Assembly: GCA_950097015.1 (NCBI GenBank) | Contig: CATNEN010000038.1 | Coordinates: 5,332,001-5,396,000 of the forward strand | Direction of reading: 5' to 3' | DNA from: Macrostomum hystrix | Lineage: Eukaryota; Animalia; Platyhelminthes | DNA: 64,000 nt | Part shown: piece by piece, positions 5,132 through 19,516 of the stretch | Layout of the letters: every line of letters begins with the position of its first letter | How positions within the stretch are numbered: the stretch's first letter is position 1 | Translations under genes and position numbers: made by a program | The notes under the pieces: generated by a model | Told to the model about the DNA's origin: nothing | The model's database searches: none | What the model saw: only the letters and a program-made list of their open reading frames with translations

Positions 5132-7044
5132 ATGGACATCTCAGGACTGAGCGTGTCCTACAACTTGACTACTGGCAGCATGCTCAATGTTGTGCCTGGT
5201 AAGTCCATCCATCCATCCATCCATCCATCCATCCATCCATCCATACATCCATCCATCCATCCATCCATCCATCCATCTATCCATCCATCCATCCATCCAT
5301 CCATCCACCCATCTATTCATCCATCCATCCATACATCTATCCATCCATCCATCCATCCATCTATTCATCCATCCATCCATACTTCTATCTATCCATCCAT
5401 CCACCCATCCATCCATCCATCCATCCATCCATCAACCCATCCATCCATCCATCCATCCATCCATCTATCCATCCATCCATCCATCCATCCATCCATCCAT
5501 CTACACATCCTCAGAGATCACCTATCCTGGCCTGGTTATTCTGCTGTTCGGTTGCATTGTCGGCGGTCTGGGCAATATTCTCATCATATTGGCCGTTGTG
5601 CTCCGCAGGGTGAGATTTAGTTCAACTATAATCCTGTTCTTAATTTGTTTACTATCTAAGAAAAATGTAAAAATGCCACCCCTGACTGAAATCAATCCAC
5701 GCTCCAGTCGTTGCATCAGCTGAACAACATCTTCGTGGTGAACCTGGCTATCGCTGACCTCCTGATGACACTCATTGTCGACCCATTCGGCGTAGTCAGT
5801 GAGTCACTGAATAATTAGTGATAAGATTAGCTTGACCTACCTGATCACATTGGTGAGACTCACTAAACCTTATCCCCTTGACCCACTAGATCTACCTGGT
5901 TCCCTTGACCCACTAGACCTACCTAGTTCCCTTGACCCACTAGATCTGATCCACTTGACCCACTAGACCTACCTGGTTCCCTTGACCCACTAGATCTGAT
6001 CCACTTGACCCACTAGACCTACCTGGTTCCCTTGACCCACTAGATCTGATCCACTTGACCCACTAGACCTACCTGGTTCCCTTGACCCACTAGACCTACC
6101 TGATTCCCTTGACCCACTAGATCTACCTGGTTCTCTTGACCCACTAGACCTGATCCACTTGACCCACTAGACCTGATCCCCTTGACCCACTAGACCTACC
6201 TGATCCCCTTGACCCACTAGACCAAGTTTTTTTCTCAGACACTTGTCTCCATCTGGCAGGCATTTTCCATGGTCAAATTTACTACATGCAACGGCCCGCC
6301 TTATGCATCATTGTTGCCTCGGTCTGCCTGACTGCCTGCTACTGCTCACTGCTCAGCCTAGGGGCCATTGCAGTCAACCGCTACATCCACATCTGCCACC
6401 CTGGCAGCTACAGAGCCGTCTACAGCCGACGCTCCACATTGGCTATGTGCGTCAGCCTGTGGATCGTCAGCTTCCTGCTGGAGCTGCCAAACTTTCTTGG
6501 CTGGGGCGGGCACACGTACGATTGGAAGAACATCACCTGCCTTTGGGACCGACTGGCTTCCAGATCCTACACCATCTTCTTCGGCTTCGTGGCTGTCGGC
6601 CTGCCCTGTTGCGTCATCGCTGTCTGCTATCTGCTAATCTTCCTCAAAATTCACCAGACCACCAAGAATGTCAAGAAACTTCTAGCAGCCAATGAGCAGT
6701 CTGAGCAGCAGCAGCAGCAGCAGCAACACAGCTTCAGCTCAGCTCGCCTTGCAAAGACCCTGTTCCTCGTATTCGCTGTCCTTGTGATCTGCTGGACACC
6801 GTTCACTGTTTTAGTGGTGTTCGACTACAACAACCGCCTGCCAATGCACTTCCACGCTTACAGCACCTTCCTTGCGCACTCCAACTCCACCATCAACTTC
6901 CTGGTCTACGGCCTGACCAATCGGGAGTTCATGAAAGGCTACCAGGAGGCGCTGAAACGTCTGGCCGCGGCCTGCCACCTTGGCAACCGGCGTAGCAACC
7001 GCGTGGCCAATGAGAGCTCAATGGCTATGCCGGAAATTCACTGA
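5132..7044 (+). CDS. Class A GPCR, melatonin-receptor-like; exons 5132-5198, 5515-5609, 5708-5798, 6260-7044
   Basis: GT-AG junctions keep frame. TM1 GN (GGLGNILII), TM2 [12 protein letters not shown]3 NRY motif ([10 protein letters not shown], melatonin-receptor type), TM6 CWTP, TM7 [12 protein letters not shown]. Confidence 0.9.
5205..5500. repeat. (CCAT)n microsatellite filling GPCR intron 1
   Basis: Starts immediately after the gtaagt donor and ends ~12 nt before the acceptor. Confidence 0.97.
5875..6223. repeat. Minisatellite (cttgacccactagacc core, 23-27-bp units) in GPCR intron 3
   Basis: Direct periodicity. Confidence 0.93.
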
Positions 7045-8062
7045 TTGGCCTCCGCCGTTCCTGGGGTTCGAATTTTCTGAAGACGCATTCTGATTGGTTG
7101 TCAGAACTAAACCATGGTACATATCCAATCTGATTGGTCAATAGTTTGCGCCTAATTATTTTCCGCTACCCTCAATCTCATCACACCGGTCTAATATAGT
7201 ACAACTTCGACACCATTTTGGTATCAATATCTAGAGAGCTAACTTTAACAATAGCGACAAGCTGACATATTTTTCACGAAATTCGTGACTTATGAAGAGC
7301 AAATTCGTTCATTGAATCGCAGACAAACACACACAGCTCAAGCGAAGAGCTCATCTACCTACCTGATTTAGCTTTGATCTGAGCATCATTAAGAATATAA
7401 TTGTGACTGGTAATTAATCATGGAACCCACTCAAGCCGAAATTACAATTGTGAGCCTCAAGCCAATGCCCTGTTTTGCACCTGACTGCTAATGAAGCAAA
7501 AAACACAGGAGAAAGGGAAGAGGTTAATTCAGTTGCAAATTCATGGGCAGAACGGCTTTGGCTTTGAGCTTTAGCGATCGAGTTCGGTATGACTTTGAGT
7601 GTTTCTCAAGCATCAGCTGGCTGGGTGAAATAAGGTACCTTACCTTACGATAAAACTCAATTGAATTCGCTACTTTTGCATAACGAAACTTATTCAGTTC
7701 GGCGACTGTACGGATGGAGGTAAATATCAGTAAATGGATGCGAATGTAGCGTTTGACTGATCCGATGCAGCATAATGCATGTCCATGATCATAGCGTGAA
7801 CCTGTGCTGCGCTACTTCGAATGGCTACATGTAATAACGAAAATTAAATAAGAGGACGGAACAACAGTTTTTTGGAGTTGTTGAAGCTATAAGGTTCTGA
7901 TCTCATTATAAGTATTTACTCTTTAACTGTAATGCTCACACTACATGTAAATCATTGACTTGCATTGGGGATAGATGTACGGATACGTACATTCAGTACG
8001 TATAAATCTACACGTAACATTAGTGTATTGATATAGCACATTTAGTTGATAATAATACTATA

Positions 8063-8315
8063 CCTTTTCAACTTCGGATTCGTCAAAAGTGAGTTCGAAT
8101 TCGTCAGCCTATATAAAACTATAGAGCACTCAAGGGAATGAGAAGGGGTGTCTATGGTAATTTCTTTCGAGAAAGTGACTTCGAATTCGTCAAAGTAAGT
8201 GAAGTTCGTCAGTGCAAAAGCAGCCTGATCAGAAAGTGTCTTCGCTTCGTCTATGGCAAGAAAGCAAAGTGCCCAGTGTAAATTTAAGCGAGAAAGTGAG
8301 TGAAATTCGTCAATG
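8063..8315 (+). repeat. Left terminal inverted repeat (253 bp)
   Basis: Reverse complement of 10787-11039; internally rich in TTCGTCA and GTCTATGG motifs. Confidence 0.95.
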
Positions 8316-8338
8316 TAAAATAAGTCAGCAATCTTTCA

Positions 8339-8821
8339 TTACTCATCTACGTAGATTAAATTCCTTACAAACAGTCCAGTTTCTAGCATCCAGGTCATGT
8401 GTAGAAAGTAATCTAGCTTCTTTTGTCACGTCACTATTGCAATCTCCGTGAACCCGCCGTACATCTTTTAATGTAATGCACAAAGTCCCGTCAAGCCGAC
8501 GACTAATTGCCTGCGTTGTCACGACACGAGCAGCAGGAAAGTCTGCCACAAGCTTTGCTGCATTTCTTTTAGCGTTACAGTCGGCTTCTCTTCCACGTAC
8601 CTCGTCAATGCCTCGAGCATCTCCTCAGTGAACTTTGGTCTCAACACACCTCCACGCGCGTTAAGATCAATCCTATCTTCATCTACATATCTTCTGATAA
8701 TGTCATTGGCAGTCGTCCTCTTGATGTCCAGTTCAACTGCGAGAAGTCTCCAGTCTCGTCCCTGTTGAAAACATCGCACGAGTCTAGAGCGATCCACAGA
8801 CGAAATTCTCATATATGGCAT
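8339..8821 (-). pseudogene. IS630/Tc1-like transposase, N-terminal half (HTH domains to first catalytic D), two frameshifts
   Basis: MPYM...LAVELDIKRTTANDIIRRY...ARGG..PK...EKPTVTLKEMQ (paired-like HTH plus RGG linker); shifted frames give VTTQAISRRLDG..ITLK..CNSDVTKEAR and MLETGLFVRNLIYVDE* (first DDE aspartate motif). Confidence 0.75.
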
Positions 8822-8997
8822 CTCTGACAACAATAAGAGCAGGAAATGAGTAATGAAAGATTGCTGACTTATTTTATATTGTCTCATGATTTCTACACAA
8901 AATAGGCGTTTAATAATCTTTCATTATCAAACGGTTGATAATGCATGACTAAATTTAGATACCGTCTATGGTAATTCGTCAGAAACTTTGGTCTTAA

Positions 8998-10490
8998 ATG
9001 TTCGAAGTTACAGCGAAGACTTCTCAGTTTTTCATTTTAAGCCGTCTTCGCTTGCCTGCCTTAAACATGACCGCTACGCATCTTATCAATTGGTCTCATC
9101 TGCCGGTTGATAGTCTCGATGGCGTTTCATCCAGCGAATACTCATTCATTGCGGAGCTGAGCAGTGACAATCACCGAGATGACAATCAGCTGGAGGACTT
9201 TATTAACTTCATTACCGATCATTCACGATCTGACGATGAACTGCTTGGTGTCGATCTGCCGGAATGTGAAGATGATGGAGCTTCTGTTGCTACTGATGTC
9301 ATGGACAAGGCCGAGGTGGATTCTCTACCAAGATCGACCAAGGAGCAAATGTTCCTTTATGGCAAAGCGTTTGCCAGCTACATGAGTGACTTGGGTCATC
9401 CTGTTGAAAGTCTCAAAACAATGGAGCCCAGTAGCCTCAACGAGCACCTGCGGTTCTACTACTTTCGGCTTTCTAAACCGAATGGAGAGTCGTACTCGCC
9501 ATCTAGCTTGGTCTGCATTCGGGCCGGCATCCAGCGATTTTTTCACTTCATTATCAAGCGTGAACTCAACATCGTCGATGATCCTAACTTTGCTACTGCC
9601 AATCGCATGCTTCGAGTTAAGGTGCGGGATTTTCATTCTAAAGGCGGGAGCGTGAAGCGTTACGAACCGATAGAGCGCGCCGATCTAACCAAGTTGTCCA
9701 GTTACTTTGATCGCTCGACTGGAGAACGACTACAGGATGAAGTGATTTACACTTTATTGTATGTCTTGGGAGAGCGCGGTCAAGAGCACCTCCAACACCT
9801 TCGTCAGAGAGACATACTCGTAGAAAAAGAAGACGGCGACGGCAAGAAGTATTACGAGCTACCTAACCTCAGAACCAAGAACCAGAGTGCCAATCCAGTC
9901 AAGGCCAAAGGTTTCAACCCAAAACAAGCGAGAATCGAATCTATGGCGGTCAGTATGAACTCATTAAGACCTACCTTCAAGTCCTGCCCAACGAAACCAA
10001 GGACAATTCGTTTTTTCCAAGACCGATGGCAAATAAAGAAGGACAGCTGCAGTTTTAAACTAAGCAGGTTCGTGGGATCAATTGGTTAGGATCGTTCATG
10101 ACTCGATTAAGCACCCTGTGTGAGCTCAGCAAAAAGTATACGAACCATTGCATTCGAGTAACTAGGACGGCTGATCTACACGAAGCTGGCTATACTCTGT
10201 CCGACATCATGAATATCACGGGACATCAATCTGAGTCGACAGTTCGGCGGTATCTATCGAGGAAACGTGACCACACGCTGCGAGACATGGCTACGACTGT
10301 GGGGGAAGCTTAGCAATCAAGTGATTCTCGTACGAACACAGAATTGGTTAGGACTGATCAGCCATCTAACGCTGGATCGTCAAGCACGATGGACGTGAGT
10401 AACCAGAACATTACACTTAGTAGGCAGAACGTCTCAACTATCTTCACGGATTGTCATTTCTCTGGCTGCACTTTCAACTTGAATGGTTAG
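8998..10490 (+). pseudogene. Crypton-like (DUF3504 type) tyrosine recombinase, one frameshift (~9940) and two in-frame stops
   Basis: LNEHLRFYY..KPNGESYSPSSL..IRAGIQR; catalytic set R (GERGQE), K (TKNQ), HxxR (TNHCIR), H (TGHQS), Y (VRRY); C-terminal IFTDCHFSGCTFN typical of this family. Confidence 0.85.
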
Positions 10491-10786
10491 AGACATCTGC
10501 GTCATTGAGAATTGCAACTATAAACAACTAAAAACTGTAAACTGTTCATTGCTTAACCATTGAAGCTGATTTCTCGTTGATATGAAAAATAAACTCGCAG
10601 TTCCACCATAGTCTATGGTAGATGTTGAAAAGTTGGCGTTTGATAATCACAAAATTACACAACGAGAAATAATAAGAGAAAGAATGTGACAATGTAAAAT
10701 AAGTCAGCAATCTTTCATTAATTTCATGGCTTCGCCACTCGTGACTTTGAGCATTATCAAAGCCTAAAACCATAGACACAACTAAC

Positions 10787-11039
10787 CATTGACGAATTTC
10801 ACTCACTTTCTCGCTTAAATTTACACTGGGCACTTTGCTTTCTTGCCATAGACGAAGCGAAGACACTTTCTGATCAGGCTGCTTTTGCACTGACGAATTT
10901 CACTTACTTTGACGAATTCGAAGTCACTTTCTCGAAAGAAATTACCATAGACACCCCTTCTCATTCCCTTGAGTGCTCTATAGTTTTATATAGGCTGACG
11001 AATTCGAACTCACTTTTGACGAATCCGAAGTTGAAAAGG
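10787..11039 (-). repeat. Right terminal inverted repeat (253 bp)
   Basis: Reverse complement of 8063-8315. Confidence 0.95.
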
Positions 11040-11043
11040 TATA

Positions 11044-11490
11044 TTACAGGAGGACTAGGTGGGCAATTTCACATCATTTGGTGACACCAGACCCGCAGCA
11101 GGCAATTCTGCCCATTCCGCTAACACCTAAGGTGCAACTCGAACTCAGCTGGTACGGGAAATCTCCAGAATCCGCCTGACTAAGCCGAATGCAAATTTTC
11201 AGTGTCCTCTTTTTTTAAAGAAAGATGTCCGATGATTGGTTGAACAAATCATTCTGCCCGTTTCGTTGACTCCTGAGCACACACACACACACGCAGATAC
11301 CGTACGCAGGCACACACAGGTGTGTACATCTGCCCTGACTTTGCCCGGAGATTGGCCCTCAAGTGCGTAAATCGCACTAAAAGTCCCCAAGCCTTCTCTC
11401 CACGGCAGCGCCCCAAATGAATGTGGCCTCGCCACGGAATCGAGCTCGGGGACCTTGGCGCGAAAGACAAACGCGTTAACCCGTTTAACC
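11044..11490 (-). mobile_element. tRNA-derived SINE, family A
   Basis: Homologous to the copies at 19005, 20125, 21904 and 27594 (tggtgacac.agacc.gcagc, gactcctgagcac, ccccaagccttctct, B-box remnant). Confidence 0.8.
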
Positions 11491-12005
11491 CGTAATCGAG
11501 GGATCGAGTGTAGTGCCCCACCCGGTCGACGGACTGAACAGCTGTTCGCAGCCTTCAGCAGAGGCTGTGAAGTGCCGTCAGCAGTCTGTTGTGAGAACTC
11601 ACAATTCCGTTCTCAATTCCTTCTACAGAAGAACACTAATTTAAGTTATCGAAATCTTTCTTCAACAAAAAAAATAATTTTTTAAAAAAGGTCCAACTAA
11701 AAACTAAAAGTGCAATTTGGCTGCTTCTCGATTCAACAGTCCAATGGTCAGTGTTACACCCTATGCAGGTGTTCTTATTGGCTATCTGAATAGAAAAAAT
11801 AGACATTCTATGTCTATCAAACGGCCCTGTTATCTCCTGTGTTTTCGAGTCAAAGCGCATGACCAATGGGCCATGAACTGTTGAACAGCTTCTAATTTTA
11901 AATAATAACATTTTATAAAATTTAAAATGTACAGAATGGTACAGAATGGCACTGAGTTAATTGCTCAACCGCAATCATTCGCTTCAGACTGAAAGTCTAG
12001 AGAAG

Positions 12006-15000
12006 ATGACCAGCAGCAGCAGCAGCAGCGACCGCCGTCGTCTTCTTCTAAACCTGTTCTTCGGCTTGCTAGCCGTGGCTGGGCAAGTCGGCCAGAATGT
12101 GTCTCTGCCGCTGTGGATCGACTCCGGCCGGCCCGACACCTGCGGCAACCAGTCCGCCGGAAATGACACCGTCGGCTTTGAAGCATCGCTGCCGCTGCTT
12201 CTTGAAGACAGAGCGAGCGCACAGGAGCTACTGGTGCTTGAGGAGGAGCCGGCCATTGCCAACTGCACAATGGCCCGCAGCATCGATAGCTACTTTGTGT
12301 ACACATTTGCCTGCATCAGCTTCGTGGTCATCTTCGGCTTGCTGCTGATTCCGATGAAGCTGCTCAGCCCGGAGAGCCTCGGCCAGACCGAGCTTCGCTT
12401 TCCTCAGTTTGCCCTGTTTCTCATCGGCTTCTTTGACGCCTTGAACGGCGTGCTGGTTGTCTTCGCGTCCAGCGGTCGTCGAACTCTGCCAGCTCTGCAG
12501 CCGATCCTCAGCAATTTCATGATCCCCCTGACCGTGACATTCCGGCTCGCCCTGCTCCGAAAACGGCCCTCGCCGTTGAAGGGTCTCGCCGCGCTTGGCG
12601 TCTTTTTGGCCCTGGTGATCAGCCTGCTGCCCACAATGATCCCATCGCTGGGTGCAGACACAGCCGGAGGGGCCAGCGGAGCTGCCCGGGTGATCTGGCC
12701 GGTCGTCTTCATGCTGGGCTTCGTGCCAGCAGCCGTCATGAATGTCCTGCAGGAGAAGTGGCTCAAGCACCGTCTGGAGGCCGCTGGTGGTGGCCAGTTA
12801 AACCTCATCTTCTTCTTGTTCAGCACGAGCTGCTACCAGCTGCTGACAGCCCTGGCCCTGTTCTGGGTGGACATTGTCCCGGGTTACGGTAATGCCAGCA
12901 GCCTCTGGCAACTCGGCGACAGCTGGCGCTTCGGCATCTCCTGCTTCTTTGGAGGAGACGGCTGCCCGCCAGACTCTGGTATTCGAGGTTCCATGTTTAT
13001 TGGCATGTACACAATTTCCTACATCGGCGGCGGCCTGCTGCTGCGCTACGCCGAGGGCGCCACCCTGCTGGCCGTGGTGTCAGCACTCGTCACTCCGCTG
13101 GGCTTCTTGTTCTGGACCTTCTTCCAGGTTGGTCAGGGTTGCAGGCCGGGTTTGTGCAGTCGGTGGTGGCATTTGTTCAGATGAGGCTCGTATCTGTTTC
13201 AGTCATACTCGTTCTAGTATGATACTAAATACTTTTGGGGTCGGTGGCTGAGTGGATAACGCGTTTTCCTCTCGCACCACGGTCCCAAAGTTCTATTTCG
13301 CGGCGAGGCCGCGTTTTTTGGGGTGCAGCCGCGGAGAGAAGTATTGGGGACTTGTGATTGTCATGTCGCTTTGTTAAGGCTTTTGTTTGCAATTTTTATT
13401 TGGTGTGAATCATTTAACAGTGGCAGTTGTGAATCAGTTAACAGTGGCAGTTGTGAATCAGTTAACAGTGGTAGTTGTGAATCAGTTAACAGTGGCAGTT
13501 GTGAATCATTTAACAGTGGCAGTTGTGAATCAGTTAACAGTGGCAGTTGTGAATCATTTAACAGTGGCAGTTGTGAATCAGTTAACAGTGGCAGTTGTGA
13601 ATCAGTTAACAGTGGTAGTTGTGAATCAGTTAACAGTGGCAGTTGTGAATCAGTTAACAGTGGCAGTTGTGAATCAGTTAACATTGGCAGTTGTGAATCA
13701 GTTAACAGTGGTAGTTGTGAATCAGTTAACAGTGGTAGTTGTGAATCAGTTAACAGTGGCAGTTGTGAATCAGTTAACAGTGGTAGTTGTGAATCAGTTA
13801 ACAGTGGCAGTTGTGAATCAGTTAACAGTGGTAGTTGTGAATCAGTTAACAGTGGCAGTTGTGAATCAGTTAACAGTGGCAGTTGTGAATCAGTTAACAG
13901 TGGTAGTTGTGAATCAGTTAACAGTGGCAGTTGTGAATCAGTTAACAGTGGCAGTTGTGAATCAGTTAACAGTGGCAGTTGTGTATCATTTAACAGTGGC
14001 AGTTGTGAATCAGTTAACAGTGGTAGTTGTGAATCAGTTAACAGTGGTAGTTGTGAATCAGTTAACAGTGGCAGTTGTGAATCAGTTAACAGTGGCAGTT
14101 GTGAATCAGTTAACAGTGGCAGTTGTGTATCATTTAACAGTGGCAGTTGTGAATCAGTTAACAGTGGTAGTTGTGAATCAGTTAACAGTGGTAGTTGTGA
14201 ATCATTTAACAGTGGCAGTTGTGAATCATTTAACAGTGGCAGTTGTGAATCAGTTAACAGTGGTAGTTGTGAATCAGTTAACAGTGGCAGTTGTGAATCA
14301 GTTAACAGTGGCAGTTGTGAATCAGTTAACAGTGGCAGTTGTGTATCAGTTAACAGTGGTAGTTGTGTATCAGTTAACAGTGGTAGTTGTGAATCAGTTA
14401 ACAGTGGCAGTTGTGAATCAGTTAACAGTGGCAGTTGTGAATCAGTTAACAGTGGTAGTTGTGAATCAGTTAACAGTGGCAGTTGTGAATCAGTTAACAG
14501 TGGTAGTTGTGAATCAGTTAACAGTGGTAGTTGTGAATCAGTTAACAGTGGTAGTTGTGAATCAGTTAACAGTGGTAGTTGTGAATCAGTTAACAGTGGT
14601 AGTTGTGAATCAGTTAACAGTGGCAGTTGTGAATCAGTTAACAGTGGTAGTTGTGAATCAGTTAACTGTGGCAGTTGTGAATCAGTTAACAGTGGCAGTT
14701 GTGAATCAGTTAACAGTGGCAGTTGTGAATCAGTTAACAGTGGCAGTTGTGAATCAGTTAACAGTGGCAGTTGTGAATCAGTTAACAGTGGCAGTTGTGA
14801 ATCAGTTAACAGTGGCAGTTGTGTATCAGTTAACAGTGGCAGTTGTGAATCAGTTAACAGTGGCAGTTGTGAATCAGTTAACAGTGGCAGTTGTGAATCA
14901 GTTAACAGTGGCAGTTGTGAATCAGTTAACAGTGGCAGTTGTGAATCAGTTAACAGTGGCAGTTGTGTATCAGTTAACAGTGGTAGTTGTGAATCAGTTA

Positions 15001-15683
15001 ACAGTGGCAGTTGTGAATCAGTTAACAGTGGTAGTTGTGAATCAGTTAACAGTGGCAGTTGTGAATCAGTTAACAGTGGCAGTTGTGAATCAGTTAACAG
15101 TGGCAGTTGTGAATCAGTTAACAGTGGCAGTTGTGAATCAGTTAACAGTGGCAGTTGTGAATCAGTTAACAGTGGTAGTTGTGAATCAGTTAACAGTGGC
15201 AGTTGTGTATCAGTTAAAAGTGGTAGTTGTGAATCAGTTAACAGTGGTAGTTGTGAATCAGTTAACAGTGGTAGTTGTGAATCAGTTAACAGTGGTAGTT
15301 GTGAATCAGTTAACAGTGGCAGTTGTGTATCAGTTAACAGTGGTAGTTGTGTACCAGATGTTCGTGATCAAGATTGAGTGATTCTTCAAGCGTACTGCTT
15401 GACGCAAATGACTTCTACGACTCTTTTTCTTAGAAATGCCGTCTATCTTGACGCACCTTTCACACTGCAGGAGAATCCTTTTATGTTTCACATCGCCACA
15501 AACTACACCACCTGGTTCGCTCTGGCCTCATTGGCCCTGATGGTGCCCGCAATCCTGGCCTACAACTGGCGCTCCGAAGCAGCCGATGAAGCGCGGAGGC
15601 TGCTCATTCAGGGCGATGAAGGATCTGAGATCGACGAGGACGGGATCTACAGAGGGGCCGGAGTGGAGTATTCATACTACTGA
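12006..15683 (+). CDS. CRT-like (chloroquine-resistance-transporter-like, DMT superfamily) membrane transporter; exons 12006-13127, 15471-15683
   Basis: About ten hydrophobic segments; GQNVSLPLW, GFFDALNGVLVVFAS..RT...LQPIL, GFVPAAVMNVLQEK motifs; phase-0 intron cag|gttggt ... ctgcag|GAG keeps frame. Confidence 0.8.
13237..13357 (+). mobile_element. SINE family A, 5' fragment (intronic)
   Basis: GGGGTCGGTGGCTGAGTGG A-box head followed by family-A sequence. Confidence 0.7.
13404..15352. repeat. 24-bp minisatellite (gaatcagttaacagtggcagttgt), ~80 copies, in CRT-like intron
   Basis: Direct periodicity. Confidence 0.98.
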
Positions 15684-16655: not shown

Positions 16656-19516
16656 TCAAGCCCTTCTGTAGACGTAGAACTTTCCTGGCAGGTCATTGTA
16701 ATAGTGCTCCATGATGCCGGTCTGCACCTTCTGCCAGACGCCGTCCGCTTCCAGACGATCCATCGTGGGCTCCAGAACGCGAAGGTAGTCGGTCCGAAGG
16801 TACTCTTCGCGTAGCGCCATGCAGAAGATGCCGCCAGACTTCAAGGTCATTGCCAGCGGCATCAGGTGCATCGGTCCCAGGTGCCCGGGCAGGAAGGAAC
16901 CCGAGGTCACAATGGCATCGTAAGATCCTGATTTGAGAATTTTTGTCGAGAAGAATGAGAAAATTTGCTATTAGCTCTGAAAAAATGTTTCAAAGCGGTG
17001 TTACTTTGTGGGGTTCCTACCCTGCTCCACAGCTTTAATCCTTTCGCTGTCAATGAGCTCTTCGAATAGCTGCTTGTACACCTGCTTCTTGGCGGCTACG
17101 TCCAGCATGCCGCGGCTGCCATCAATGGCATCGATGTTGTCGAAGCCAAGCTCCTTCAGCTGGCGAGTTGGGGTGAGTGACAGTTGGTAGGCGTGAATAG
17201 ATAACTCTGTCGTAGGTCAGTGGCGAAGCCAGGATTTTTGTCTAGGGGGGCCGCGCGTTTTGGGCGCGCCACTATTGGGAGGCGCCACTACCACGGGCGC
17301 CACTATCAGGGGGCGCCACTACCAGTGGGCGCCAGCGCCAATACTAGAGTTGCCACTCTGCCGCGGGGGCGCCACTATCAGGGGGCGCCACTACCAGTGG
17401 GCGCCAGCGCCAATACTAGGGTTGCCACTCTACCGCGGGGGCGCCACTATCAGGGGCGCCACTATTAGGGGCGCCACTATCAGGGGGCGCCAGCGCAACT
17501 ACTAGGGGGTGCCACTACCACGGGGACGCCACTACTCGTACAATGGGGCGCCACATAGTTTTGTCAGCCGATTAAGGGGGCGAGGCCCTCCTTGCCCCCC
17601 CCTGGTAACGCCCCTCTTTAAGGTAAAGTGTAGTTCTATTTTAAACAGAATTCGTTAAAATCTCAACTGACGGCAACGCCGCCAAGACCGGTGCCAGCAC
17701 AGACGTCCAGGATCTGTGCGCTTTTGTCTGGCAGGTACGCATCAGCCAGCCTCGCAATCTTTTGCGGATGAGTGTAGCCGTGAGACATGTTAAGCAGATC
17801 CTTCATGCGATTTTGAGTGAATGTGAGGAGTGTGTTAATGATATGTTACCGTTAGTTTTCAGCGTTTTGTAAATGGTATATATTCCCCATTTATTTTGTT
17901 GTCTAGCGAGCAAGAGGTGTCTCGTTTATTGACCGAGGCGAAGCCGAGGTCAATGATCGAGACACCGAGTGCTTTTGGCCCTAGACAGCTAAATGAGTGG
18001 GGAATATGATATGTATCCCCCGTTCGGTGTGTGTAGCTTTTGTGTGCTACACTTTTTTGCTAGTTTTTGTTAGTCTATGGTTGTTGTCTCGAATTTATCA
18101 GCCCGCGGGGCAGCGGGAAATAAATGATTTATTCACCTAGGGAAATAAATGAAAACATGCGTCACATAGACACTCGCCCGGGGCAAAAGGGGGACACATA
18201 TTTCTTCGTCCCGGACAAATAAATGCTACAACACTAGACCATAGACTTATTGGACCAGGATCGACAAGTGGGGATACATGTGACTGAATTTCATTCGACT
18301 ATTCGTAATCTCTTAAAAGTTTGTGCTAATATCTAACGAAATAAAACCTTTTTGCAATTTTTAGGCTTCCACACGACGTTTTAGGCTTTCCCAGAACAAA
18401 CCCGTTCATATTGGCCGGCAAACTCGTTGTACATCTCTGAAGTTTTTGCTCCTCCGTACGCCATTGTGTCAAACCGGGAGAAGAACACATTTGCTCGGTG
18501 TTCTGTACAATTTGTCTGCTGCTGCTGCTGCTGCTGAACTGATGCCATGGCAGATAACGTACGCTGGCAGTTTAAATGCTACGAGTATAACTCTAACTCA
18601 AGTAAAATGAATATTCTCCAGTTAGCTAATAAGAAGTTGGGTTTCTCAAAAGAGCCTTGATAACGAGATGAAGAGTAGGAGTTACGAGCTACAGACGAGC
18701 TGCTACACGCTTTTGCCTACCATGCTATAATATCGTGACGTCAGTGCAGACATTTTAGGGAAAGCCGTGCACAAGGCAGGAGCATTGCTTTCTCTCCACC
18801 GAAGGTCTCCGTTCTCTCATTGGACGGCATTATCAGTCCATCCTGTCTGATAAAGCGTTTTTGAACGACAAAAAGACTTGACAGATGTTCACAGCAATCT
18901 TCTGGTGCCTAAAGGCTCAGAATGTGGTCTTAGAGACAAAGCATCTCCACATTTTGTCTTCGTTCTCCATTGAATGTAAGCAGAAGATCTTATAGCATGG
19001 AAGGTAATGGCAAATCATTTGGTGACACTAGACCCGCAGCCAGCCAGGAGGCGACTCTGTCGATTTCGCTGACTCCTGAGCACATTTGCACGACAAGCCC
19101 CCAAGCCTTCTCTGCACGGCTGCGCCCCAGTTTAATGTCGCCTCGCCGTGTAATCGAGCTCAGGGACCTTGGCGCGAGAGGCAAACACCTCAACCAGTCT
19201 GCCCTCACCCCCTCAAAGCCGCTGACTTATATTTTGCAAGGGCAATTAAAAACCTTGAGTTGGGAGAAAAAAATAAAAAACAAGTTTTAAACAAAATTCT
19301 ATTTAAGCATAAAAACAATAATATGAATAAGCATGCCCCTTTCTGCTCATTGCTGCAGTCACATTCTGCGTCGATGATGCTCCTCACCTGTTCATAGTTG
19401 CTACTCCAGTCATTGTACATCGACTTCACACCCTGGGGATCTTTAGAGTACAGGTCGTCGACAATTTGGTCGCTTCTGGCCTTGGCGGCGGCGGCGGCAG
19501 TCTCTGACGATGTCAT
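16656..19516 (-). CDS. METTL27: METTL27/WBSCR27-like SAM-dependent methyltransferase; exons 19516-19388 (or 18548-18402), 17800-17672, 17159-17021, 16927-16656
   Basis: MYNDWSSNYEQD; motif I ILDVCAGTGL; GFDNIDAIDGSRGML; YDAIVTSGSFLPGH; LKSGGIFC. All GT-AG junctions in frame. Confidence 0.85.
17218..17616. mobile_element. MITE-like non-autonomous element (hAT-like ends) with internal ggggcgccacta repeats
   Basis: Imperfect TIR CAGTGGCGAAGCCAGG ... CCTGGTAACGCCCCTC; flanks tcgtaggt / tttaaggt are only a degenerate 8-bp TSD. Confidence 0.55.
17876..18280. mobile_element. Double-hairpin non-autonomous element, possibly Crypton-related
   Basis: Hairpin 1: atattcccca..gtctag..gtgtctcg..attgacc[gaggcgaagccga]ggtcaat..cgagacac..ctagac..tggggaatat. 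Hairpin 2: atgtatcccc..agtctatggt ... accatagact..ggggatacat. Confidence 0.55.
18402..18548 (-). CDS. Candidate alternative first coding exon of the METTL27-like gene
   Basis: ATG-initiated, 49 codons ending MYNEFAGQYER|gtttgt; parallels MYNDWSSNYEQ|gtgagg of the upstream exon in sequence and phase. Confidence 0.7.
19005..19212 (-). mobile_element. SINE family A, internally deleted copy
   Basis: Shares head and tail blocks with the other copies. Confidence 0.75.

Follow-up and report, generated by a model that had tools for sequence, protein, structure and literature searches.

The animal, DUF3504-related Cryptons known as CryptonA (Kojima & Jurka 2011, PMC3212892) are about 1.9 kb in length, contain a single ORF and lack a reverse transcriptase. 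Their ORF encodes a tyrosine recombinase with the residues R..K..HxxR..H..Y, and relatives contain QRICH1, DUF3504 and Phage_integrase domains. No terminal repeats were found in animal Cryptons, and the six animal phyla named as hosts do not include Platyhelminthes (PMC3212892). Tc1/IS630 (ITm) elements of the IR-DR type are about 1.6 kb in length, encode a DDE_3 transposase with an N-terminal paired-like HTH, duplicate a TA and have terminal inverted repeats (TIRs) with repeated internal words. In Tec1 and Tec2 of the ciliate Euplotes crassus, a DDE transposase and a tyrosine recombinase are found together inside long inverted ends. Tec elements are high-copy. Both genes occur in every member of the Tec family (PMC3212892). 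A preliminary description of the locus reported here cited the Tec elements for this pairing, which is incomplete, since a composite of a Crypton and a Mariner-type transposon, MarCry-1_FO, has been published from Fusarium oxysporum (PMC3212892). One TIR pair of MarCry-1_FO, flanked by TA duplications, encloses genes for a Crypton recombinase and for a Tc1/mariner-type transposase. Four copies, more than 97% identical, carry both genes (PMC3212892), from which it follows that the DDE enzyme of MarCry mobilizes the whole element.

Here, we describe a unit of the flatworm Macrostomum hystrix in which parts of a Crypton and of a Tc1-like transposon lie within one pair of inverted ends. It was found in a window of 64,000 nt (contig CATNEN010000038.1, positions 5,332,001 to 5,396,000), and coordinates given without a contig name are window positions. 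As first read, the unit would have been the founding member of the first animal transposon family to join a DDE transposase and a tyrosine recombinase; this false lead is now removed. The unit is not a new two-enzyme family but an ordinary nested insertion, because other TIR-bearing copies hold the transposase only and other copies of the recombinase sit at unrelated sites within ends of their own. We assign a probability of roughly 85% to the reading that two independent transposons, designated T (Tc1-like) and C (Crypton), were nested and rearranged here into a single dead composite that arose once. A whole-genome search (220 Mb) recovered the full 2,985-bp unit from the window only, with its parts occurring separately elsewhere. 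None of the other TIR-bearing copies held both genes, and each gene occurs elsewhere within ends of its own, which was the outcome named in advance as speaking against an undescribed, Tec-like metazoan family, and that proposal is not supported. The alternative offered with it, a TIR element that had acquired a Crypton, was essentially right, with the correction that the Crypton used its own chemistry to integrate at CAATG.

The composite unit (8059-11043) is bordered by near-identical inverted ends of 257 nt (99.6% alike). As inverted arms, positions 8056-8315 and 10787-11046 are 99% complementary over 260 nt; when the palindromic TATA is left out, the arms are 253 nt in length and the unit reads CC...GG over 2,977 bp (8063-11039), as had been described. 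A paralogous empty site (C38:7357696-7358053) has the sequence AATAC-TA-TTACAGG. This site holds a single TA, and the true element is therefore TACC...GGTA (8061-11041), flanked by a TA target-site duplication whose left and right copies lie at 8059-8060 and 11042-11043. The flanking TATA noted previously is thus present, but its interpretation as a 4-bp target duplication is ruled out by the empty site. The TA used for insertion has a GPCR-like gene on one side and a transporter-like gene on the other.

The Tc1-like element T measures 1.63 kb, is bounded by 159-nt TIRs, duplicates a TA and encodes a 352-aa DDE_3 transposase for which an intact gene survives; at least 15 copies are present in the genome. 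The TIR-bounded copies (at least 11, of 1.19-1.63 kb) all have the arrangement TATA/CC..GG/TATA, with termini TACC..GGTA. The intact ORF is found in one copy, and its product matches the Pfam families DDE_3 (2.7e-15, above the cut-off; residues 155-283) and HTH_32. A DDE_3-type transposase, TIRs and a TA target duplication, the last confirmed by the single TA at the empty site, place T among the Tc1/IS630 (ITm) elements. Among the T copies, of which there are at least 15, a similarity search revealed no recombinase. Nor are long TIRs a feature of the family, as the canonical TIR is 159 nt and the 257-nt arms, which occur in the window only, are two left ends. The outer 159 nt contain one diagnostic site, column 31, which is G in 4/7 left ends and C in all right ends; it is G in both window arms.

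C is a Crypton of 1.92 kb (1,917 bp) with its own ends, namely a palindrome of ~100 nt at the 5' end and ...GTGACAAT at the 3' end, with AAT common to element and target. About 8 copies at 99.5% identity occur in the genome. The copies on C28 and C37 are full, and those on C39, C34, C38 and C1 carry deletions; all are about 99.5% identical and have the common ends AATGGTTAGTT plus palindrome and GTGACAAT within unrelated flanks. Near-identical copies at unrelated sites indicate that C is independently mobile. In the four copies with readable flanks (C37, C28, C39 and C38:26.4M), the flanks do not resemble T, and bracketing inverted repeats are lacking within 1.4 kb. Like CryptonA, C shows no target duplication and has a short identical word, shared with the target, at both junctions (AAT to CAATG); AAT is found at both ends of every copy. 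A head-to-tail junction of 3' end, AAT and 5' end at C38:8354853-8355111 is consistent with a circular intermediate, and would fit either the entry of a circle into a copy already resident there or a duplication in tandem; the predicted circle junction is GTGACAAT joined to GGTTAGTT. Unlike CryptonA, C ends on the 5' side in a near-perfect palindrome and has subterminal inverted repeats of 17 nt, and its window copy is rearranged and dead. The palindrome is predicted to fold at -47 kcal/mol (z = -14.7), and its apex is a repeated breakpoint in four other C copies, at C64-68.

An intact C ORF of 490 aa is present in one copy, that on C28 (L003:1712-3184, minus strand). Residues R260, K294, H382, R385 and Y417 are invariant among 15 aligned relatives, while position 408 is H or Q. 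The protein has the catalytic R-K-H-R-H/W-Y set of a tyrosine recombinase, and with one long ORF in 1,917 bp the element has no room for a reverse transcriptase. Its Pfam matches, to QRICH1 (4e-5; 24 bits against a cut-off of 30.8) and Phage_integrase (2.6e-5), are both below the cut-offs, and the C recombinase itself has no Pfam match to PF12012. The preliminary assignment of the enzyme to the DUF3504 type draws indirect support from the relatives, 11/15 of which match PF12012 (10/15 match PF25561), and not from the protein's own matches. A PDB sequence search with the recombinase alone as query gave no match. A search with the family profile gave weak matches to XerA and integrases, in which the HxxR and GH..Y segment was aligned to archaeal XerA (5hxy).

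Within the unit, arm 1 (8061-8346, plus strand) is the left end of T (T3-288) and is 98.3% identical to canonical T 1-288. It contains the terminal repeat with three AATTCGTCA-type direct repeats and two GTCTATGG words, followed by the 5' UTR word 's' (8311-8346), where the CAATG site is unoccupied. A 6-nt overlap, ACTCAT (8341-8346), links arm 1 to an inverted block, T790-253 (8341-8881, minus strand), which was identified by tblastn and HTH_32 as the transposase 5' UTR and codons 1-160, with the start at 8824. The Crypton-like body (C113-1917; 8877-10693, plus strand) is 98.8-99.6% identical to the copies on C28, C37, C39 and C34, begins with the 17-nt subterminal inverted repeat ATTGTCTCATGATTTCT and ends in ...AGAAAGAATGTGACAAT. 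Joined to its 3' end is an inverted duplicate of T253-283 from the T 5' UTR (10690-10720, plus strand; 100% identical), so placed that the original right-hand integration junction, GTGACAAT followed by GTAAAATAAG, is turned round. A 6-nt filler, ATTTCA (10721-10726), lies at a breakpoint on the palindrome apex, and its three letters at 10721-10723 belong to neither T nor C. The outer arm and loop of the Crypton 5' palindrome (C67-1; 10724-10790, minus strand) are 98.5% identical to C1-67 and keep the original left-hand integration junction with T, AACTAACCATT against GACGAATTTC, while the inner palindrome arm (C68-112) is missing from the window copy. Arm 2 (T257-3; 10787-11041, minus strand; 98.4% identical to T1-257) is the native left end of the T copy into which the Crypton integrated, and a single position of 257 distinguishes it from arm 1.

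Both gene types reported for the unit were recovered, each in a damaged state. The tyrosine-recombinase gene (8998-10472, plus strand) lies within the C body and, as described, retains all codons for R (GERGQE), K (TKNQ), HxxR (HCIR), and H and Y (GHQSESTVRRY), although its frame is broken. A 5-bp insertion at 9932-9936, where GAATC is duplicated, shifts the frame and is found neither in four other C copies nor in the contigs of four public sequencing runs. Nonsense codons follow at 10056-10058 (TAA; TCA in the other copies) and 10311-10313 (TAG; TTG in the other copies). An alternative genetic code for the in-frame TAA is ruled out, as the other copies have TCA and one holds a clean 490-aa ORF under the standard code. 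Five changes, namely four substitutions and the 5-bp insertion, are private to the window C body and occur in none of the other copies. The Tc1/IS630 transposase remnant (8824-8342, minus strand) covers residues 1-160 of 352, comprising the HTH region only, and its frame is shifted, since compared with other copies it has gained 4 bp near 8406 and lost 1 bp near 8553. No DDE residues are present in the remnant, and T791-1479 is absent from the window. As judged from these sequences, neither gene could work now, because the transposase lacks its DDE domain and the recombinase has a frameshift and two stops; the unit would be movable at most in trans, by T transposase from intact copies.

The unit thus resembles each of the described systems in part. 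Unlike in Tc1/IS630 elements, the transposase is without its catalytic domain and the termini are two left ends in place of a left and a right end. Unlike MarCry-1_FO, the unit is single-copy, has no DDE domain and still displays the Crypton integration junctions in its interior. Unlike in Tec1 and Tec2, the two genes come from separately mobile families and the long ends are secondary.

The history that we propose begins with T (1.63 kb, with 159-nt IR-DR-type TIRs) inserting at the TA, a step that we regard as demonstrated. C (1.92 kb) next integrated into the T 5' UTR at TTCGT-CAATG-TAAAA, as both junctions attest; the form of the target before insertion, TTCGTCAATGTAAAA, is known from canonical T copies. 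This integration took place by site-specific recombination, with CAATG remaining on either side and no duplication. We infer that serial template switches then took place in the course of one or two replication or repair events, which may have been triggered by the ~100-nt terminal palindrome of C together with the inverted ends of T. Synthesis would have stalled at the palindrome apex (C67) and restarted at T283 on the opposite strand, leaving the 6-nt filler, and the whole C body would have been copied back to the palindrome base (C113). A CAAT microhomology could then have allowed a return to T258 and onward synthesis to T790, where the 6-nt microhomology ACTCAT would have led to a switch to T288 and copying back to the terminus. 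The net result would be an inverted C body, an inverted duplication of 27 nt of the T 5' UTR, loss of the inner palindrome arm and a second left end in place of the catalytic half of T (T791-1479). The 257-nt arms would be near-identical because the left end of T was copied to the other side. This template-switch path is a reconstruction that reproduces every junction, not an observed process. The contigs of the public runs include T in a form that lacks the 1,910-bp insert (joint 8876/10787) and the canonical joint of palindrome to body (10781-TAT-8877).

Other paths were considered. A recombinase-mediated inversion between the Crypton 3' junction and the inner subterminal repeat gives the 8876/8877 junction, and it was dropped in favor of template switching because it cannot account for the 27 nt of T that remain attached to the 3' end at 10693/10694. 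A tail-to-tail fusion, through a deletion, of two T copies that had inserted independently is possible and was judged less parsimonious: as the empty site shows the flanks to be contiguous, the second copy would have to have hit the flanking TA of the first exactly.

The most serious competitor to an in-situ rearrangement, and one to which we give a rather low probability, is that the composite was formed elsewhere and then mobilized whole into this TA by T transposase acting in trans, which would make it a non-autonomous Tc1-like element with Crypton cargo, an early hitch-hiker of the MarCry kind. Such a move is compatible with the clean TA duplication and the empty paralogous site, although the original T insertion accounts equally well for the duplication. 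At each terminus the unit has a complete T end of the left type, including every direct repeat of the transposase-binding type, with 1/257 positions differing between the two, and intact T transposase genes exist in the genome; the left-type call at the tip, however, hangs on one polymorphic site. Given G at column 31 in both arms, an in-situ origin needs the last switch to have fallen within ~30 nt of the tip. A donor copy would not be expected after cut-and-paste transposition, but one copy genome-wide provides no evidence of a second insertion. Far less probable is a decayed member of a true dual-enzyme family, Tec-like or MarCry-like, whose enzymes co-operated inside common long TIRs. Its precedents are Tec1, Tec2 and MarCry-1_FO (PMC3212892), the window does place both gene types within one inverted-end pair with a TA duplication, and recombinase and DDE_3 genes adjoin more often than chance in this genome. 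Against this, a recombinase is present in 0 of at least 15 T copies and 0/4 C copies with readable flanks lie in T, the integration junctions of C (CAATG on both sides) survive inside the unit, the long TIR is one end in duplicate and the canonical TIR is 159 nt, and the unit has HTH residues 1-160 in the absence of a complete DDE catalytic domain. The one other neighbor pair that was read, at C34 (L005), moreover involves a different Tc1-like family, junction and orientation.

The three sites of 31-37 nt in the unit (8311-8346, plus; 8846-8881, minus; 10690-10720, plus; 97-100% identity) are real, each contains or abuts the CAAT core beside which the Crypton recombined, and the recombinase gene sits between the second and third. 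That they are recombinase targets, with the transposase and recombinase segments as invertible or excisable cassettes, is nevertheless highly improbable, as all three derive from the T 5' UTR (T253-288), which occurs once per canonical T and is not found in canonical C. This makes them sequence of the target side and not arms belonging to the element. The window recombinase is also broken, and the contigs of the four runs hold neither segment in another orientation, a weak test given that these contigs are short. We consider it equally implausible that the composite is an assembly artefact joining repeats of different loci. The region consists entirely of repeats, and the window-specific internal junctions are drawn from the assembly, since the public contigs are short, break at repeats and do not span them. 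The assembly, on the other hand, comprises 220 Mb in 42 contigs and hence long reads of well over 3 kb, a contig of run X2 covers the left flank into the arm (7600-8088) with zero mismatches, the five private changes in the C body mark a distinct locus and not a collapsed consensus, and at the paralogous empty site the flanks run on without a break.

This locus provides a fully resolved Crypton integration in which both junctions and the unoccupied target are known, which is rare for animal Cryptons. It also illustrates step by step how complex rearrangement is driven by a long terminal palindrome and TIRs, and how 'long-TIR' derivatives originate. Genome-wide, 6/76 recombinase loci lie within 1.5 kb of Tc1-like DDE_3 matches where 0.21 were expected, an excess of about 28-fold. 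The six lie at C39:1595609-1602438, C38:1410244-1412777, C33:1751863-1754748, C10:82033-83843, C41:588753-590558 and C25:3652129-3654119. The pairing of recombinase and Tc1-like genes therefore recurs in this genome, which counts against reading it as one-off, and the non-random association is a quantitative hint that bears on the origin of MarCry or Tec composites. A tentative explanation, which we hold to be possible but on balance doubtful, is that the Cryptons of this flatworm systematically target the ends of Tc1-like transposons, possibly through the shared end word GTCTATGG. The recombinase appears to pick pseudo-copies of the 3' arm of the Crypton (GTCTATGG, then 30-115 nt, then G[AT]C-AAT), and these words are also present in the TIR and 5' UTR of Tc1-like elements. 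If so, Crypton-in-Tc1 nests would be recurrent, and palindrome-driven rearrangement could occasionally turn a nest into a TIR-bounded unit carried by Tc1 transposase. This would offer a natural route to dual-enzyme elements of the MarCry and Tec type, with its first step seen here in an animal. A candidate second composite at C29:5.98 Mb was rejected by its coordinates, which place the recombinase fragment about 0.8 kb beyond the end of a T-like copy.

The 2,985-bp unit at window 8059-11043 was used to search the genome (220 Mb, 42 contigs; the window is C38:5332001-5396000), and the whole unit was found only in the window, its parts occurring apart as two families: a 1.63-kb Tc1-like family (T) and a 1.92-kb Crypton family (C). 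One part of the unit is assignable to the Cryptons and the other to Tc1/IS630, and the best explanation is a rearranged Crypton-in-Tc1 nest. The preliminary description had offered either a dual-enzyme transposon family or a TIR element that captured a Crypton. Its observation is confirmed, and the choice resolves to the ordinary alternative: C junctions with C's own ends lie within T, and the dual-enzyme family falls away with a unit found only at the window.

The canonical T copy (L010:1249-2885) is 1.63 kb long and has 159-nt TIRs and a TA duplication. Its TIRs hold repeated words, namely AATTCGTCA-type direct repeats and GTCTATGG. The intact 352-aa transposase matches DDE_3 (2.7e-15) and HTH_32, and its nearest named relative (45% identity) is from Macrostomum lignano. 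At least 15 T copies were seen, at 96-98% identity. Recombinase similarity was sought in these copies and found in none.

The canonical C copy (L003:1501-3417, minus strand) is 1,917 bp with one ORF, intact (490 aa) in the contig C28 copy only. C copies are ~99.5% identical and lie at unrelated sites with their own ends. The 5' end consists of AATGGTTAGTT, a ~100-nt palindrome and a 17-nt subterminal repeat, and the 3' end, ...AGAAAGAATGTGACAAT, is the inverted partner of that repeat. The terminal palindrome (L003:3285-3417, minus strand, in the C28 copy; also in L002 and L006) is near-perfect, with a 36-bp outer stem and an inner stem-loop (-47 kcal/mol, z = -14.7); the window copy (10724-10790) retains the outer arm only. 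The palindrome merits recording because no terminal repeats were found in the animal Cryptons of PMC3212892, from which family C differs in this respect. Neither T similarity nor bracketing inverted repeats were found within 1.4 kb on each side of the four C copies whose flanks were readable (contigs C37, C28, C39 and C38:26.4M). The nearest named relatives of the C recombinase are Macrostomum lignano proteins (50% identity), and with the transposase match they mark the host as a Macrostomum-like flatworm. Among 15 aligned recombinase relatives, R260, K294, H382, R385 and Y417 are invariant and 11 match DUF3504; in the family profile, the HxxR and GH..Y segment aligns to XerA.

Several further Crypton forms were observed. 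At C38:8354853-8355111 (L008:2204-2462), C1794-1917 is joined head-to-tail to C1-138 via a shared AAT, the pattern expected of a circular form or tandem integration. A ~100-bp mini-element at contig C1:19500299-19500396 (L050) comprises C1-68 and C1882-1917. Another Crypton family, at L041 on contig C39, has 66% DNA identity to C, 18-nt inverted repeats close to its two predicted ends and, exactly at its predicted 5' end, a hairpin (L041:758-816, ~19538326-19538384) of 22-nt arms with ATAGACAAT; this suggests that a terminal hairpin is conserved across Crypton families. Public runs X1-X5 and X9, which cover three organism codes and one outdoor metagenome, contain contigs that match the Crypton body at 99% identity or more, and a 1,802-nt contig yields a 99% identical protein (P0001); this may reflect close relatives, shared strains or transfer.

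Within the unit, the blocks run as T1-288 (8059-8346, forward), T790-253 (8341-8881, reverse), C113-1917 (8877-10693, forward), T253-283 (10690-10720, forward), filler (10721-10723), C67-1 (10724-10790, reverse) and T257-1 (10787-11043, reverse). Two parts are absent: T791-1479, within which the DDE domain lies entirely, and C68-112, which forms the inner arm of the palindrome. Both original integration junctions are kept, at 10790 (...AACTAACCATT|GACGAATTTC) and at 10693 (...GTGACAAT|GTAAAATAAG), and the unoccupied target in the T 5' UTR, TTCGT-CAATG-TAAAA, is seen in every canonical T copy. Since both junctions and the empty target are known, C integrated itself, with no duplication, at a word common to element and target, as is the Crypton mode (Goodwin; Kojima & Jurka, PMC3212892). 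Public-run contigs contain the T form without the 1,910-bp insert (joint 8876|10787) and the canonical C palindrome-to-body joint; these contigs are short and end at repeats, and it is the assembly that documents the junctions specific to the window. A contig running from the left flank into the arm, together with changes private to this C body, marks the window composite as a distinct locus.

Both genes reported in the preliminary description are present in broken form. The tyrosine-recombinase gene (8998-10472, plus strand) has recognizable catalytic codons, as had been claimed, and carries a 5-bp insertion (9932-9936) and the stops TAA (10056-58) and TAG (10311-13), all three private to the window copy. 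The Tc1/IS630-type transposase remnant on the minus strand (8824-8342), likewise borne out, encodes the N-terminal 160 residues with the HTH region only, is frameshifted and has no catalytic residue.

The inverted arms (8056-8315 and 10787-11046) are 260 nt long and 99% complementary, far above chance. The 2,977-bp CC...GG span described earlier (8063-11039, with TATA on both sides) agrees with our reading of the sequence. The same contig has an empty paralogous site at a distance of 2 Mb (L059, C38:7357696-7358053), which reads AATAC-TA-TTACAGG with nothing in between; because it has a single TA, the element proper is TACC...GGTA (8061-11041), flanked by a TA target duplication. This site matches window 7800-8062 (left flank, 97%) and 11040-11135 (right flank, 88%), and the paralogy is a segmental duplication that predates the insertion.

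Rearrangement is invoked because a simple insertion would give the opposite C-body orientation and a 159-nt right TIR. We infer that the present shape arose by template switching, and a single chain of switches reproduces all junctions. Synthesis would have stalled at the palindrome apex (C67) and restarted at T283 of the opposite strand, leaving 6 nt of filler and copying back across C1917-113. It would then have returned to T258 via CAAT microhomology, continued to T790, and switched at ACTCAT (6 nt, 8341-8346) to T288 to copy back to the terminus. Consistent with this path, deletion breakpoints recur at the apex (C64-68) in four further copies of C (contig C39, C38:8.35 Mb, C1:19.5 Mb and C33:2.90 Mb). 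The chain would also account for a 31-36-nt stretch of T 5' UTR that occurs three times (8311-8346, plus; 8846-8881, minus; 10690-10720, plus); these copies are target-side sequence absent from canonical C, and not recombinase arms, contrary to a reading as invertible cassettes. The two TIR arms differ at 1 of 257 positions, which also fits this path; they are a recent duplication of one end rather than a family trait. Only one position in the outer 159 nt is diagnostic, and both arms show the left-end type there. Two histories would explain this: a last switch within ~30 nt of the tip or, as we consider unlikely, formation of the composite elsewhere, with T transposase then carrying it here as a unit.

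Dual-enzyme transposons are known: Tec1 and Tec2 of Euplotes have both a DDE transposase and a tyrosine recombinase, and in MarCry-1_FO of Fusarium, which has four copies with 16-bp TIRs and TA duplications, a Crypton is fused to a Mariner-type element (PMC3212892). A 2026 paper on Glomhopper (PMC13465315) states that a DDE gene within a Crypton was reported for MarCry only. Such families are defined by several copies that bear both genes, by conserved long TIRs and by a catalytic DDE domain, all of which the window unit lacks. Of modest value are the structure of the Crypton ends and the association of Cryptons with Tc1-like elements.

That association extends across the genome. With 76 recombinase loci listed for the genome, and 150 hits to DDE_3, six recombinase loci have a DDE_3 match within 1.5 kb, versus 0.21 expected under uniform placement (~28-fold excess): C39:1598370-1602438, C38:1410772-1412777, C33:1751863-1754748, C10:82033-83843, C41:588753-590558 and C25:3652129-3654119. 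Two of these are probably one segmental duplication. On contig C34 (L005:3206-4118, minus strand, ~1461433-1462345), a decayed second Tc1-like transposase gene that shares 40-50% identity with T adjoins a 5'-truncated C copy on the same strand; this contact differs from that in the window in Tc1-like family, junction and orientation. In 4 of 7 independent C insertions, the 120 nt upstream of the 5' junction contain an exact match to GTCTATGG or to its complement (~0.01 expected per flank, from the rest of the window), and C's own 3' end has GTCTATGG 72 nt ahead of GACAAT. C itself, like 4 of 7 of its targets, has G[AT]C directly ahead of the shared AAT. The two elements T and C have 31 exact 10-mers in common (6.3 in shuffles), along with three exact 12-mers: AATCTTTCATTA, which lies upstream of the start codon in each, GATTTCTACACA and TCTATGGTAATT. 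The window holds 11 occurrences of GTCTATGG (2.1 expected): those within the unit (8150, 8249, 8964, 10611, 10770, 10846, 10945) sit in the Tc1-like TIRs and near both Crypton ends, and the others are at 18073, 18239, 61406 and 61532. On the simplest reading, C is hypothesized to prefer targets resembling its own 3' arm, as offered by Tc1-like ends.

At 17880-18007, a ~128-nt palindrome is built of nested inverted repeats with arms of 27 and 31 nt, adjoining the inverted GTCTATGG pair at 18073 and 18239; it has no recombinase similarity and may be the end of a non-autonomous element. The ~90 nt right of the unit (11043-11135) belong to a dispersed repeat of very high abundance, with 793 first-look candidates at ~80% identity and very high depth in public runs. 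The unit lies between an ORF resembling a rhodopsin-type GPCR exon (6286-7044, plus) and a 407-aa multi-pass membrane ORF (11961-13184, plus), and several minisatellite arrays surround it, such as that at 13404-15380 (period 24).
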